Source: Piromyces finnis finn (lineage: Eukaryota; Fungi; Neocallimastigomycota). From it: a DNA stretch of 64,000 nucleotides. Position 1 is the stretch's first letter; each line of letters begins with the position of its first letter. Below are positions 12,765 through 24,995 of this stretch, one piece after another. Made by a program: the position numbers and the translations under genes. Under the pieces are notes generated by a model, which ran no database searches, was not told the origin of the DNA, and saw only the letters and a list, made by a program, of their open reading frames with translations. Location of the stretch: the NCBI GenBank assembly GCA_002104945.1, contig MCFH01000033.1, forward strand, positions 248,001-312,000. Reading direction: 5' to 3'.

Positions 12765-13384
12765 TAAAAGTATTTTAAATACATCAATATAAAATCAAAC
12801 AACAAAGAAAAAGAAAAAAAAAATATATTTTTGGTATTTCGTAATTATATAAAACATAATTAATGATACATCTAAAATATAAATATTGATATCATTAATA
12901 AATATTTTTTTTTGTTATATTATTTAAGATTTTATTGAATATTTTATATTTCTATTATTAAATTATAAAAAAAATATTTATAAAATACAACTATATTAGT
13001 TATTAAAAAAAATACTTCATATTTATATTATAAAAGTTTTGAATGATTATTGTAACTTTATATAGAAAATGTTATAAATCAAAATAATATTTATTTATAT
13101 AAATATACTAAGATAATATAAAATTTATTTTATATTATGAACTAAGACGCTAAACAAATAATAAAATAATAAAGTACTAAAATTAATATTAGCTTTTTTT
13201 TATTATTAATTTGCATATTATTTATTATTATGTATTATTTTGTGTTAACACTTTATTTGTTAAAAATATTTACTTAAAAAAAATGTAATTACAATTATTT
13301 TTTTCCTTGTTTTAATTTATATATATTGTATTATTTATATGTGGGAATATATTAGGTGTTAATATGATATATATGTTAATTTGT

Positions 13385-16300
13385 TTATGCAACCTTTTCT
13401 TTCTTTTTAATGAAGAAACGTTTATATATAAAGTAACTAATAAAAAGTAATATTACAATTAAAATAATTGTTCCAAATACTAATAAAAGTTGCATATATG
13501 TTTTCATTGAGGCACCATAAACATATAGAGCAAATTTTGCTTTAAGTGTACAGTAACTTTATTGCATTATTCAAATTATTAATATAATTATTATTTATAA
13601 CGTTATTAAGAGTTTAAAAATACAATTTAAATAAATTTTAAAAATTTAAAATTTTTAAATGGAAACTTTTAAATTTACCTAAATTCAGGATCTACAACTG
13701 TTGCAGTAAACATTAAATACATATTATTTTGACCTCTCCAATTAATACCATTATTATTATTTAGTGATATAATTTGATATTCATCATTTTTATTAAATTC
13801 GCTTTTATCCTTTTCACAAGACACATAATTCTATAATATAGAATATTCACTATTTTAGTATTATAATTGTTAATCATTTTTTATAATATTTATAAAAATT
13901 ACTTGTGGTGTCCAAACATTAGTGATATCTTTTAATGGGTATTTTAAAATCATTTCCGACCATGTTTGTGCTTTAGATGTGCAGTTTGTCTATATATATT
14001 TATATATATTAACATTAATTTAAATATTATAGATTTTAAAATGAAATGTTTTCTTTTTTACATACATCTTTTAGTTTTTTAGAATATGAGTATGCAATAC
14101 TTCCTTTATCTTCAATTAAAATATACTCAGTATCTACTTCTTTTATAAAAGTGTCACCGTCATACAATGAAAAAGTTGGAATAAATTCACTTGAGTAATA
14201 TACTGGAATTGGAGGTCCATAAATACTGCAATCAAAAAATTCATGCTATTATTAAATGGAATAATTTTCAATTTATTAATTACTTCATTATAATAAATTC
14301 TCAAAATATTATTTTTATCATAAGTTTCTTTACTATCGAATACTTACTTTATCTTTTTTACCAATTTCATTTTTTTGCCAATCTTTCCAATATTTCTTGA
14401 AATATTTAAAGCTAGAAGGATATTCAGTATTATCACAATTCAAACCTATATGATTTTCTGGAACATTAAAACGAATATGTCTGTTTGGTGGACATTTCAA
14501 ATAAATCGTACTACTCTATTTTTTTATTTAAAATAAAATAGTATTAATATATTAGAATCACAATATTTTTTTTAAAAAAAAGGGAGAGAGAAGTAAAAAA
14601 AAGTATAATTACCTTTGGAGCTATTTCACATTCAATTTGATTATTATGAGGTGCTACAACAACATTTGATATTCCATTTTTAGTTTTGTATTTATTTGTT
14701 ATTTGGACATTTCTATTTAATGTTTTTATTGAATTGCTTGAGTACTTATCAACATTTTTAATTTCTTCATCAGTATAAGTAATATTTAACAAATCAATAT
14801 TGGAATAGGTAAACTTTTTTATTTATTAATAAAATATTTTTAATTTATTGGGTTAATTATATATAGAAGATAATTACTGATATGCCATTTAAATATCCTG
14901 ATTTTACTGTCACAGATGAATTAAAACTAAGTGATTCACCTAAATGATTAATTAATAATCAATTTATTATATTTGTTATAATAGCTTATTTAAAATATTA
15001 TATTGGAATAAATTAAAATACCAATATCAATAAAATATTCTGATTTTATGTCACTACTAAATTCATAAATTGGACATTCGCTTATAATGTTATCTTTTGC
15101 TTCTTTGTTAGAATTTTCATATCTATAATATGAAAATTAAGATATTAGTTTTGATAATATTTTTATATTTTTGCAATTTTTGGATTTCTAATGGGAAAAT
15201 GTAAATACCTTTTTATCGAAAGTTCATTATGAATAGGTATCCTTCTTTTTATTAAATATGGATCATCCTTAGATGATGTAATAACAAATAAATTACCAAA
15301 TTCATCAAATTTTATTGTTGATGATGTATCTTGTATTTTAATTGATCATATATCATATATATAATATTAATATAATTTAATAAACAAGATAATCATTGTA
15401 ATATTTGCTTGATAATATTAGTTACCATCTTCTGAGATTCCTGATGTAATTTCATATAATTCTGGTATAACTGAACTTCCATAAAATATTCTAATTTATG
15501 TTGATAGCAATTATAAAATATATAATTAATGTATGCTAAATAAACAGAAATTTAAATACCTATATTTTTTCTTTCTTTCTCTCTTTTTTTTTTCTTTTTT
15601 TTTATCAATTAAATATTTATTATTTTTTGAATGGGTAGTAATAAAATTATTGATTTAATTACCTATTAGCCGAAGTTTGAACTGCAATATTTCCAAATTT
15701 TGAAGTGATTAAATTTTTTATCTTTTCATTTTTAATTGAAGATGCTAATTCATCATCAATATTAATTAATGACATTTCATATACATATTCACCTGAATTT
15801 GGACTTTAAATATCACATTAATAAATCTTTTTTTTTTTTAAAAAATATTTTATAATCAAGATTTTTTTTTTTTTAGTTATTACCTGTAAAAAAGATTCAT
15901 TTTTCCATAGATAAATAATTCATTTGTTCCGAGATCAGATATAACTAATTTTTCAAGTGAATTGATATAATACATCTATATTATTACATTATATATATAT
16001 TTAAATATTTAGATTAATTTAACTTTTCTCTTATCATTATTTAAAATGCTAATTAAAATAGTATTTACATTCCCATCCTTTTGAGATAATCCTTTCTCGA
16101 AATTAAAACCTTCTCTTATTTTATCTTTTTCAGGATCATAAATAAGAATAATGTTGGCATCATTATTATTTTTTATTAAAAGAATGAATGATGTATTCAA
16201 CGGGTGAATTACAATATCAATAATAGAACCATAATGCTTTACATATGTTAGATTTAATGATTCAAATTTATCTGTTGTAAAATAGAAGCGATCATCTTTA

Positions 16301-17720
16301 TATAAGAATGCAACAAAATAATTATTATAATTATCAATCTTGTTATTCTCTCTTGTGATTTTTATATAATTAATATCGGGGGTGCAGAATGAGGTTGTTT
16401 TCAAATTAGTGATTTTTTGATCAACAGGAAATATGTTAATAAGTTCTAAGGTTGACATATTGTTATATTTATATAATTTATTTGAAGATGTCAATATTAA
16501 TATATTTTCTGTATCAACGAGTATAATATCAATAATTGTATCATTATCGTCTATTTGTTTAATAAATTTTGTTTTTATCGTTTTAAAATTATCATTAGAA
16601 TATACAAAGCTCCTTACGCCATAATCTTTATCAGACTTTGCAATAAAAAAATTCTTATAACAAGGATTTTGATAAATACTCAATGTACTATTTGATATAG
16701 TTTTATCATTTCCTAAATCTTCATTTTGATTTTTCAGAAATTTGTTAACAACTGATAATGATAAGTTTGTCTTTTCAATGGTACAATTAAATAAATGAAT
16801 GTTATTATTTTCAATTTCAAATGTTATTAAACCAGCACGATGTGCTAATAACCTTACAGTCCAATACCTTATTTTAAGTAAAAATATTTTAATTTATACT
16901 ATATTAATATAATAGTAATAAAATATAAAAATAAAAAATTATAGAGTTTTTATAGATATATATATATAAATTTAAACTAAATATCATAATTCTATTATTT
17001 TATAAATTACCCATCACTTTTTGAAAATGAAACATCAATAATATCAAAAAAATCTTCCTCATCATGGAATTTTATATTTGGGGATAATCCATTCATATAA
17101 AGACCAACAGTTATATCTTTTTCAAACTTTATACATATTGTATTGTTAATAATAAATCAATTTTAATCTTTATTATATAAATTTATATTCATTAATATAT
17201 ATTTTTAAGAATAATATAAATACATTAGATGGCACAATATTATCGATTTCTTCAACTTGTCCAGATACTACCCATAGTTTTGCTATAAATTCTTCTCCTG
17301 GGGTTATTAAATTTTTTTGTGTTATTATACCTTCTGAATATAATGTTATAAAATTCCATCTATAACAATGATTTCTTTTTTCAATATTCACATTAAAATT
17401 ACTTGTTGTATTACTATTATTTATAATAAATTTGTGAATTCCAGTATTGCTACATTGAATAGACCATAAATTATTATTTTTTTTGTTTATTGCACAGGAA
17501 TTATTATCATTATCATCATTTTTAATATTAATTAAGTCCTTTGAATAAAAATCAAACTAAAGATAAAGAAAAAAGAAATAAAATTAAATATTTTATTTTT
17601 TGTTGTATAAAAAATATTACTATTATTATTAATGCATTTTTTATTTCACACCTTTTCATTAGTATAAAACCTATTTTCATAATTTAATGATTTATAATAA
17701 TATCGTATATTTTTCATCAT
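13385..17720 (-). CDS. CATSPERE: CatSper auxiliary subunit epsilon-like (CATSPERE/CATSPERD family) single-pass membrane protein, about 12-13 exons; 5' end uncertain
   Basis: Manual splicing with phase-consistent GT-AG introns gives, in the order seen in mammalian CatSper-epsilon/delta: IRYYYKSLNY; SCAINKK..IQCSNTGIH; HCYRWNF; GYWTVRLL..IENNNIHLFNCTI; ELFIYGKMNLFYSPNSG; RIFYG; KFDEFGNL; ECPIYEF..YFIDIGE; LKCPPNRHIRF; YGPPIPVYYSSEFIPTFSLYDGDTFIKEVDTEYILIEDKGSIAYSY; CTSKAQTWSEMI..NVWTPQNYVSC; YQIISLNNNNGINW; FTATVVDPEFSYCTLKAKFALYVYGA; one TM helix; SYFIYKRFFIKKKEKVA*. Confidence 0.85.
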
Positions 17721-19117
17721 TTTCGTTAATTATATGAAGCAATAATCTGTAACTAAAATTTTTAATATTTATATTATTAATATTTAATTAAATTTTTAAT
17801 TAAAAAAAAGAGAAAAAAAAAAAAGTAATTAAAATTTATTAATTTAATTTTATTTTATTATTATTAAAAAAAATATAATTGAATTTTTTATAGATAGTTG
17901 AATGTAAGTTAGATTAAATTATAAATAATAAGTAAATATTTCAAAATTATGTTTTTATTTTAGTCATATCTCTTTTTAGGTATTAATCGTATTACTATAA
18001 AACTTCCTCGCAATGGTTTTCCCAAAACATTTGTTAATCCCATTTAAATAGTTCATAAATCCCCTTATTTTCCTTTTTTTTTTCTAAATTTGTTATAAAT
18101 GAATTGTCTTTTTTTTTTTATTAATTTAATATGTAATTCAAATACGGTTAATACATTTTTATTGTATATTTAATGTAATTGTTGTTGAATATAAATTATA
18201 GAAAAAGTTAGATAAATCTAATGTTATATATTATTTATGTAATACTTTATAAAGTAGACAAATTGAATATTGTATAAAAAAAATAAAAGAATATTTTATA
18301 ATATGATAAAAAATATCACCATATTAATATATATTTAATATATTATATAATTCTTTAGTATTTTTAAATATTTTTACTTTTATTCTATACAAAAAAAAAG
18401 ATATAATTAAAACGAATATAATTACATTTTAACTTTAGGGTTAGATTATTATTCATTTTGATTTGTGACACTTTAATTATATTTATTTTGGTATATATTT
18501 AATTAATTATAAATTTTAAATAATAAGTAGTTTAACATTTTGTGTAACCATTTATAATAAATTTATAATTAAAAGTATATTTTGATTTGAAGACATTTAT
18601 TCTTTTCTATAATTATAGCTTTTATTATTACTATATAGATTTATTTTATTTGCCTAATAAATATCTATTAATTATAAATATTGACCAAAATAAATGTTTA
18701 GTTATATTAAATTCTTATAATAAAAAGTTCTATTTGAAACAATATAATAAATTCTATATTAATTTAAATATAGCTTAATATTTTTATAATATTAAAAAAA
18801 TTAATATTGTAATTACTATATAATATAAATGCTATTATTTTCTTTTTTTTTTTTTTTTATTATAGAATTTTTTATTATAAGTAAAACTTTTTCATAAAGC
18901 AATATTAAATAATTTTGTATATAATTAGAGGTTAAGTGATTTTTTATAAACAGGTTATAAAAAAGAAAAAGTATATTTAAATAACCTATTTAAATAATAT
19001 TATTTGCTTTTGGTATTTGAGCCTATATAACGTATCAAAGTGGATAATATCTATTTATTTAAATTATTACCAAATTATCAATAATTTTAATTTGTTATAG
19101 TTTAGAATTTAATATAA

Positions 19118-19297
19118 ATGAAGCAAAACATTATTTTAATTTTCATGGTCGTTTCATTGAGCAATATAATAAATGCAGGCGTTATTAGAGATGCTCGTAT
19201 TTGTTATGATAAAGAAGGAAAAGAAATCCTTTGTAAAAAATTAATATCATCAAAGAAAGATTTTGGAATTAAGGGTTACTCCAAGAGACAATGGAAT

Positions 19298-19330
<33 letters not shown>

Positions 19331-20710
19331 CAAGGAAATTGGTGGAATTTTAACAATTTTAATGCTAAAAATGTTAATAATGATGTAAAGGAAAATAATC
19401 CTTTTTTTAATTTTGATAACAATAACTGGTGGAATAACTGGATGAATAAAAGTGGTGAAAATGAATGGTGGAAATTTGGTAATTGGTGGAATAATTTTAA
19501 CAATAAAGCAATCTCTAGTAGTAAGACAACTAAAAAAACAAATAAAACATCATATAAATTACATTCAACTACTAAAACCATTCCAATTACAACCAAGTCT
19601 ATACCAACTACAACTAATTTACCAACTACTTCAATTAGTAATATTGAAGCCAATCCATCAAGTGTTACAACCAAATCTGTACCAACTACATCAATTATTA
19701 GTACTAGTACTAAAAGTATTCCTTCAGAAATTTATACAAAAACAACCTATTTACCAACTACAACCACTACAACCACTACAACTACTACAACTACAACTAC
19801 AACCACAACCACAACCACTACATCTTCTACTACAACTACTGCTACAACAAATTCAACTAAATCAAATGTTAATACTACCAAATCTAAGTCAACATATTTA
19901 CCAACTACAACTGTTTTAACTACAACTACAACTACTTCAACTACAACAAATACTCCAACTTCTTTTTCTCTTCCAATTAAGAAATTTGCTATATCCAAAA
20001 TTAATAATTGTAGTTTAGAACAAGCTGAAGTGTTAAATAGTCTTATTGAAGATATCAAAACTTACCGTGCTTCAGCTGTTTATCTTCTTGAAAATCAGAA
20101 TGAAGATGAAATGTATAAAAAAGTTTTCTTAAAGTACTACAAAGATATTAACAATTATTCAAAGGTTAAAGAAACATTTAACAACATTAACAATATGTCT
20201 TCTGCCGAAGCTTATTGCGAAACTAATGCTGATGAAGCTTGTGCTGATGGTGCTATGGCTTGGACTTATTTAAATAGTAATGAATTCCATGTTTGCCCTG
20301 ACTTCTTTAAAGATGCAATGTTTGGTACTATTTCAAAACGTACTAGTGAAGCCGCTTCCATTGTTCTTCACGAGTTAACTCACTGCTATGGTACCGAAGA
20401 TTTTGCTTATGGTGAAAAAGACATTAGTAATTTAAATTCCTCAGAAGCTTTAAATAATGCTGATACTTTTCGTCTTTTTGCTATGAGTAGTATATACTAT
20501 CTTAATGAAAAATATAATGGTTTATCAAAGAGAGATGATGATGATTTCTTAAATGAAAATATTGATTTCCGTAGTGAACCATTCAAGGATAAAGTTATTA
20601 TTCGTCCAAATTTAAATAAAAGAAGTGATGATTTTTTAAGTGAAAGCATTGATTTTCGTAACGAGCCATTTAAGGATGTTGTTCGTGTTCGTCCAAATCC
20701 AAACCAATAA
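19118..20710 (+). CDS. Secreted M35 (deuterolysin/aspzincin, lysine-specific metalloendopeptidase-like) zinc peptidase, paralog 1
   Basis: Signal peptide MKQNIILIFMVVSLSNIINA, then a W/N-rich segment and a Thr-rich linker. The catalytic domain has AWTY, HVCPDFF, HELTHCYGTEDFAYG (HEXXH plus GTXD) and ALNNADTF. Intronless. Confidence 0.9.
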
Positions 20711-23736: not shown

Positions 23737-24995
23737 ATGAAGTTCCAAAATTTATTTTCTGTCTATATTATCACATTTATCTTTTCCATTTATCCAATAG
23801 TTTCAGAACCAATTGTAAGCATATAACTTAATTTTTTTAAATAAAAAAGTAAATTATTAGATTATTAATTTATTTATATAAAATATTTAAAATAAAGTGT
23901 AAAGATAGTGAAGACAATGTCATTCCATGTCGAAAAGTAGTAGATAAACTTGAAGATTTGGCATTAGCTTCTTCTAAGACTAAAAAGAAAAGAGATTATT
24001 ATTCAGATTGGTTAAGTAATTGGTTTTGGAATCCATGGAATTGGTGGTACACTCCTATTTCTGGTGTTTCAGTAACAACTGTTCCAAAAGAAACTACAAA
24101 TAATGTTGGAAATAAAACTACTAAAACTATTCAAAGTAATAATAGACAAACTTCAAAGACCCTTCCAAAAACCGTTCCAAAAACTGTTCCAAAGACTGTT
24201 GCAAACTCAACAAAGAAGATTACAACTCAAAAAAGAATTACTACTACCCAAGCAAGAACTATAACTGCTCCAAAACCAACACCAATTCCAGTCTCAAATG
24301 GTAATGGAAATAATAATAACAATAATAACAATAATAACAATCTTGGTTTAGATAAGAAACCATTTACTATGACTAATTTCATAAACTGTTCAGCTGATCA
24401 ACAACAAAAAATCCAAAAAACAATTGATGATATTATTACCTATAGAGCCGCTGGTTTACGTGTTGCTCAGGATACATCAGATGAACAAAATAGACAAATC
24501 TTTTTAAAATTCTTTAAGAATGAAAACACTAGATCTCAAGTTGTTAAAGTTTTAACAAATGTAAATAACATGTCTACTGCTAAGGCCTATTGTGAAACTA
24601 ATAGTGATTCAGCATGTAGACAACAAGCTATTGCATGGACATATCTTAATAGTCGTGAATTCCATGTATGCCCAGCTTTCTTTACTCAAATTTTCCATGG
24701 TACCATTGATAAGCATACAAGTGAAGCTGCTTCTGTTATTCTTCATGAATTAACTCACTGTTATGGTACTGATGATTATGCTTATGGTGATGCTGGATGT
24801 AATAGATTAGATGCTGGCAGAGCTTCAAATAATGCTGATTCATTCCGTCTTTTCTGTATGAATTCTATTTATCACCTTAATGATAAGAAATCTGGTATTA
24901 TGAGATTTATTAATGATACTAATATTGATTTCCGTACTGAGCCATTCCAAGATAAAGTTATTATTCGTGCAGTTGATAGAAGAAATTCATATTAA
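23737..24995 (+). CDS. Secreted M35 zinc peptidase, paralog 2 (2 exons: 23737-23814, 23899-24995)
   Basis: The true start is upstream of the track ORF. MKFQNLFSVYIITFIFSIYPIVSEPI/GTAAGC splices in phase 0 to CKDSEDNVIPCRK. Catalytic motifs are HVCPAFF, HELTHCYGTDDYAYG and ASNNADSF, and the protein is colinear with paralog 1. Confidence 0.9.

Follow-up and report, generated by a model that had tools for sequence, protein, structure and literature searches.

Evidence for a full-length CatSper delta/epsilon-family gene of epsilon-type architecture in the anaerobic gut fungus Piromyces finnis

We questioned whether a stretch of the Piromyces finnis genome encodes an auxiliary subunit of CatSper, the flagellar calcium channel, and, if so, which of the known subunits it most resembles. 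The stretch in question, hereafter the window, is the 64,000 nucleotides (nt) between positions 248,001 and 312,000 of contig MCFH01000033.1. A sequence-only reading had proposed that about a dozen short minus-strand exons between positions 13385 and 17720 of the window splice into a large, single-pass, CatSper epsilon-like protein. These limits proved to be exactly the stop codon and the ATG of the gene model that we built, and the combined evidence makes it very likely that the locus is an intact, transcribed gene of 16 exons encoding a 952-amino-acid (aa), single-pass subunit of the CatSper delta/epsilon family with epsilon-type architecture.

On the minus strand, the gene opens with an ATG at 17720 and closes with a stop codon at 13387-13385; it has 16 exons, all of its introns (64-172 nt) have canonical GT-AG boundaries, and the 2,859-nt coding sequence (CDS) is a single open frame. 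The predicted joining of the pieces into one frame therefore held, although their number is 16 rather than about a dozen, and every motif listed in the sequence-only reading sits in a stop-free minus-strand piece where it had been placed. The whole window is extremely AT-rich, with a GC content of 0.16-0.33 in the exons of the gene and a clearly lower one of 0.08-0.17 in its introns. The joining of exon pieces was guided by two partial or full orthologues from a database search. The finished protein aligned end to end with Anaeromyces robustus ORX78828.1 (950 aa) at 73% identity, and likewise with Neocallimastix proteins of 951-953 aa and with the open reading frames (ORFs) of rumen transcript contigs. 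None of the 15 splice junctions coincided with a gap relative to the orthologues. In three of the transcript contigs (L001, L002, and L003), the orthologous ORF is free of introns, which indicates that these contigs are mRNA-derived and thus independently confirms the splice pattern.

A spliced transcript of the P. finnis gene itself was looked for in sequencing runs that carry only the label "RNA?", using the share of 31-nt words (31-mers) present in each run as the evidence for transcription. In run X1, 100% of the 31-mers sampled from exon 4 (16069..16867, 799 nt) were present, as were 53% of the 31-mers across positions 13300-18000, for which a fully spliced CDS predicts 51%. These shares fit a spliced transcript and argue against an untranscribed or unspliced locus; runs X2 and X3 behaved like X1 at lower coverage. 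Given the tentative label of the runs, this is indirect evidence that the locus is both transcribed and spliced.

Membership in the CatSper delta/epsilon family, as the sequence-only reading had claimed, was borne out by profile and structure-database searches. When the window exons were scanned against Pfam, three of them matched the C-terminal (stem) domain PF22850 (CATSPERD/E_C) in colinear order, namely exon 13 (14066..14245), in which the domain begins, at profile positions 31-84, exon 15 (13679..13830) at 111-162, and exon 16 (13385..13556), in which it ends, at 163-210. Exon 13 alone reached an E-value of 2.6e-8 and 34.1 bits against a gathering cut-off of 27.4, with E-values of 3.6e-5 and 5.2e-5 for exons 15 and 16, respectively, and the orthologues matched the same model with E-values of 1.5e-33 to 7.5e-35 (115-121 bits). 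The hidden Markov model comparison with the CATSPERD and CATSPERE families that had been suggested as a check therefore places PF22850 above its cut-off both in a single window exon and in the orthologues. Consistent with these matches, a phmmer search of the PDB with the A. robustus orthologue recovered mouse CatSper epsilon (7EEB_H and 9UBW_H, E-value 1.6e-28) and delta (7EEB_G, 2.3e-19), and a profile of six sequences recovered epsilon at 7e-32 and delta at 5e-27. Even exon 13 alone ranked epsilon first (E-value 4e-4), and the PDB sequence matches were CatSper chains only. Among feature neighbors in the ESM Atlas, animal CatSper epsilon clusters came out on top, followed by beta, delta, and gamma.

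The protein is also full-length and single-pass, as had been proposed. Its sole transmembrane (TM) helix (residues 918-940, QLLLVFGTIILIVILLFISYFIY; 13424..13492) is the only sustained run of 19-residue Kyte-Doolittle windows above 1.6, with a peak of 2.98, and it aligns with the TM helices of both mouse epsilon and mouse delta. Behind it, exon 16 encodes a strongly basic tail of 12 aa, rich in lysine and arginine, and then the stop codon. The protein holds 14 cysteines, seven of which align with cysteines of mouse epsilon, and 13 NxS/T sites; judged from these features and the basic tail, the region ahead of the helix would fit an extracellular domain.

We then compared the protein with its solved relatives along its length. 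Mouse CatSper epsilon (7EEB chain H; 9UBW chain H) is the best-scoring of these and is of similar size (985 aa compared with 952 aa), and its N-terminus, last beta-propeller blades, CP..F..GE motif, whole stem, TM helix, and short tail are colinear with those of the fungal protein. The CP..F..GE motif lies in exon 9 (15022..15122), where CPIYEF...YFIDIGE aligns with CPYLAF...YHMDKGE of mouse epsilon, and the motif AQTW...VWTPQ is encoded by exon 14 (13903..13989). The sequence-only reading had described this colinearity as running from near the mature N-terminus to the TM helix. We found it at fungal residues 9-104 (epsilon 52-150) and 461-939 (epsilon 490-964), but the ~350 residues between these blocks had no detectable sequence similarity to mouse epsilon. 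Similarly, the CPPNRHI motif of exon 12 (14348..14515), which had been listed among the matches to mammalian subunits, is conserved among the fungi, but no identical motif aligns with it in mouse epsilon. Mouse CatSper delta (7EEB chain G) shares the propeller tail, the stem domain, and the TM helix with the fungal protein, and some fungal motifs, for example VVDP.YSYC...VYV.GA, are closer to delta than to epsilon. Delta is, however, ~150 residues shorter, has the lower total score, and has no counterpart of the N-terminal domain common to epsilon and the fungal protein.

The N-terminal half provided further means of telling the two subunits apart. Ahead of the part shared by all three proteins lie ~455 aa in the fungus and ~440 aa in epsilon (9UBW numbering), compared with ~250 aa in delta. 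When the first 140 residues of an orthologue were searched against the PDB, only epsilon chains were recovered; the E-value of 0.024 is marginal, with residues 9-95 aligning with epsilon 52-138. This match lies at the start of the 9UBW chain and follows the common pattern RYY..C..C..GIH..CYxW. In the window, exon 2 (17224..17556) encodes the epsilon-type N-terminal domain with its CSNTGIH and HCYRW motifs. Exon 2 on its own gave no epsilon match in the PDB. Thus, total score, upstream length, and N-terminal sequence appear to favor an epsilon-type architecture. The proposal that the N-terminus leans toward epsilon is supported, although by a marginal match, and the propeller tail is of no help in telling the two subunits apart.

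Since epsilon and delta are related, we considered whether the fungal protein descends from an ancestor that predates the delta/epsilon duplication rather than being an epsilon orthologue, such that one product, or recent paralogues, would fill both canopy positions of the channel. Over the same 480 residues of the fungal protein, the matches to delta and to epsilon differ by just a few orders of magnitude in E-value. For the propeller tail, the delta Pfam model has a slight edge in two orthologues and the epsilon model in another. Each Piromyces or Anaeromyces genome yielded only one such family. Neocallimastix has two epsilon-type paralogues with ~70% mutual identity (ORY43206.1/KAG4103147.1 and ORY85269.1/KAG4095578.1), and these form one group in the tree (support 0.86), as would be left by a recent, lineage-specific duplication. 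Moreover, epsilon has been described as being as ancient as CatSper1-4, beta, and gamma, with delta appearing later in evolution (Chung 2017), and the epsilon-type architecture is treated in the literature as the ancestral form. On the other hand, epsilon is favored by the first 100 residues of the fungal protein, by its overall length, and by its overall score. We therefore regard descent from a pre-duplication ancestor as a serious contender that falls somewhat short of an even chance, and an epsilon-type, possibly pre-duplication, subunit as the most economical reading.

Several observations weigh against the assignment to an epsilon-type CatSper subunit. In the Pfam scan of protein segments, the Ig-like models PF22849 and PF23747 gave no match at E-values up to 10, leaving the Ig-like model of epsilon unmatched, although phmmer aligned the Ig-like region loosely with epsilon; none of the Pfam models for the epsilon N-terminal domains matched in the N-terminal or middle segments. 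The propeller tail did not separate epsilon from delta, with about equal scores on the two models. Only the last blades were matched, in the orthologue region corresponding to exon 6 (15663..15803), at 29 and 25.5 bits on PF15020 (CATSPERD beta-propeller, cut-off 27) and at 20.6 and 17.5 bits on PF22844 (CATSPERE), which are below its cut-off of 27.1; these blade matches in themselves count in favor of the family. AlphaFold2, run on the alignment of six sequences, returned a model too poor for fold comparison (predicted local distance difference test [pLDDT] 39, predicted TM-score [pTM] 0.28). Finally, neither the window nor any of the eight full-length orthologues encodes a signal peptide, including at the mRNA level, which is at odds with a simple type-I ectodomain of ~915 aa anchored by one C-terminal helix.

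Exon 1 (17652..17720), in which no signal peptide is found, comprises 23 codons (MMKNIRYYYKSLNYENRFYTNEK) including the start codon at 17720, with the same start in all eight orthologues. The conserved RYYY is preceded by 5 residues in the ORF of the window and by 5-8 in the orthologues, whereas RYY lies at residue 52 of the 985-aa mouse epsilon chain and is thus preceded by ~50 residues; this difference indicates that the fungal proteins encode no signal peptide. Four codons upstream of the window ATG is an in-frame TAA (17732-17730), and the stretch from there to the codons for the conserved IRYYY contains no AG acceptor. In two transcript contigs of a relative, L001 (1-62) and L002 (1-102), the 5' untranslated regions of 59 and 99 nt contain an in-frame TAG three codons before the ATG. 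Likewise, the maximum hydropathy over residues 1-60 was just 0.08. This conserved lack of a signal peptide seems not to have been remarked on before, and it is the one point that may be worth a channel specialist's attention.

This feature also bears on whether the protein, while belonging to the delta/epsilon family, no longer works in a CatSper channel, being instead a relic or recruited elsewhere, possibly with another topology. None of the eight full-length orthologues has a signal peptide (0/8), and, according to a 2026 survey of CatSper components, these components are not kept in all flagellated fungi. Set against this are the 66-79% identity across four genera, the seven cysteines that align with mouse epsilon, and the retention of the TM helix and basic tail, such that we consider a role outside the channel improbable. 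A sortilin/Vps10-type or generic beta-propeller receptor, or a dead pseudogene, is far less plausible still and, as far as sequence methods go, can be set aside: while BNR and sortilin-like propellers turn up, with low TM-scores, among the ESM Atlas structure neighbors of an animal delta model, the PDB sequence matches of the fungal proteins belong to CatSper, no sortilin, Vps10, or BNR model of Pfam matched any segment at E-values up to 10, and the intact frame, canonical splice sites, and RNA argue against a pseudogene. A better match to Vps10/sortilin, the main outcome that the sequence-only reading had said would overturn it, was accordingly not obtained, nor was any other of its refuting outcomes within the reach of this analysis.

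If the protein is an epsilon-type CatSper subunit, what might it do in an organism without known sperm? By homology with the mammalian CatSpermasome, for which we rely on the structure 7EEB, the N-terminal domains, beta-propeller, Ig-like region, and stem would be extracellular and would join beta and gamma in forming a canopy, while the C-terminal helix would pack against a voltage-sensor domain in one of the CatSper pore subunits. The subunit may be needed for assembly of the channel and its delivery to the flagellar membrane, and the channel could in turn gate Ca2+ entry that alters the beat of the zoospore flagellum. These canopy, pore-contact, and assembly roles are inferred by that homology. 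In contrast with the mouse, the fungus has no known sperm or sexual cycle; to our knowledge, no sexual cycle is known in any of the anaerobic gut fungi, and the zoospore is their only known flagellated stage, which makes Ca2+-controlled swimming of zoospores a natural inference. We therefore propose, tentatively and with more doubt than confidence, that asexual zoospores are steered by Ca2+ through a CatSper complex with a single epsilon-type canopy subunit made without a signal peptide. If this is true, such a canopy subunit would have to enter the membrane by an unusual route or adopt an unusual topology. We know of no reconstitution of CatSper in a heterologous system, so a fungus that has most of the complex and free-swimming zoospores could make the channel simpler to study.

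The sequence-only reading had called the gene hidden. This seems to hold for the P. finnis genome: word-index searches of public proteins that did return orthologues of sister species returned no P. finnis entry for the locus, which suggests that the gene is unannotated or fragmented there, possibly with a short C-terminal model. It does not hold for the family, since public databases already contain orthologues from A. robustus, N. californiae, and N. lanati, with the Anaeromyces and Neocallimastix proteins carrying the UniRef name "CATSPERD/E C-terminal domain-containing protein". In addition, the 2026 survey, which includes P. finnis, describes a fungal CATSPERD/E orthogroup of 15 proteins, along with fungal orthogroups for CATSPER1-4, B, G, T, EFCAB9, and TMEM249. 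The family assignment is thus not new, because the UniRef names, Chung 2017, and the 2026 survey already imply CatSper D/E in swimming fungi. What is gained is a correct full-length gene model of the CatSper epsilon type, with exon coordinates, for a Piromyces genome for which public protein sets yielded none.

The annotated orthologues within the Neocallimastigomycota comprise A. robustus ORX78828.1, N. californiae ORY43206.1 and ORY85269.1, N. lanati KAG4095578.1 and KAG4103147.1, and Piromyces sp. E2 OUM69390.1. Sequences of this group match the window protein end to end at 66-79% identity, sharing its start and its C-terminus. In a tree built from Neocallimastigomycota sequences throughout, the nearest relative of the window protein was that of Piromyces sp. 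E2 (79% identity, branch support 0.998). Two of the public models are incomplete: OUM69390.1 covers the N-terminal half only and ends at the exon 6 boundary (517 aa), and ORY85269.1 is ~145 N-terminal residues short, whereas its identical counterpart in N. lanati is 951 aa long. Neither the word-index searches nor a metagenome scan returned a chytrid or animal homologue, yielding Neocallimastigomycota sequences only. Exon 4 alone (274 aa), which encodes the second N-terminal domain and the first beta-propeller blades, has no sequence match outside the Neocallimastigomycota: it matched nothing in the PDB, and its sole hits among 1.84 billion representative proteins were the orthologue from Piromyces sp. 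E2 and a spurious match to a repeat protein.

The remaining exons, whose junctions are likewise free of gaps relative to the orthologues, are exon 3 (17011..17126), exon 5 (15884..15975), exon 7 (15426..15490), exon 8 (15209..15329), exon 10 (14878..14939), and exon 11 (14613..14813), all on the minus strand like the rest of the gene. Directly upstream of the gene is a low-complexity, T/A-rich stretch (17775-17839).

The neighboring genes are unrelated to CatSper. On the plus strand, a long ORF at 9160-10803 matches HSP70 (PF00012, E-value 3e-193); because this match starts at profile position 82, at least one upstream exon is expected. Also on the plus strand, the ORFs at 19118-20710 and 23958-24995 are paralogous M35 aspzincins (lysine-specific metallo-endopeptidases), with E-values of 1.7e-21 and 9e-23, respectively.

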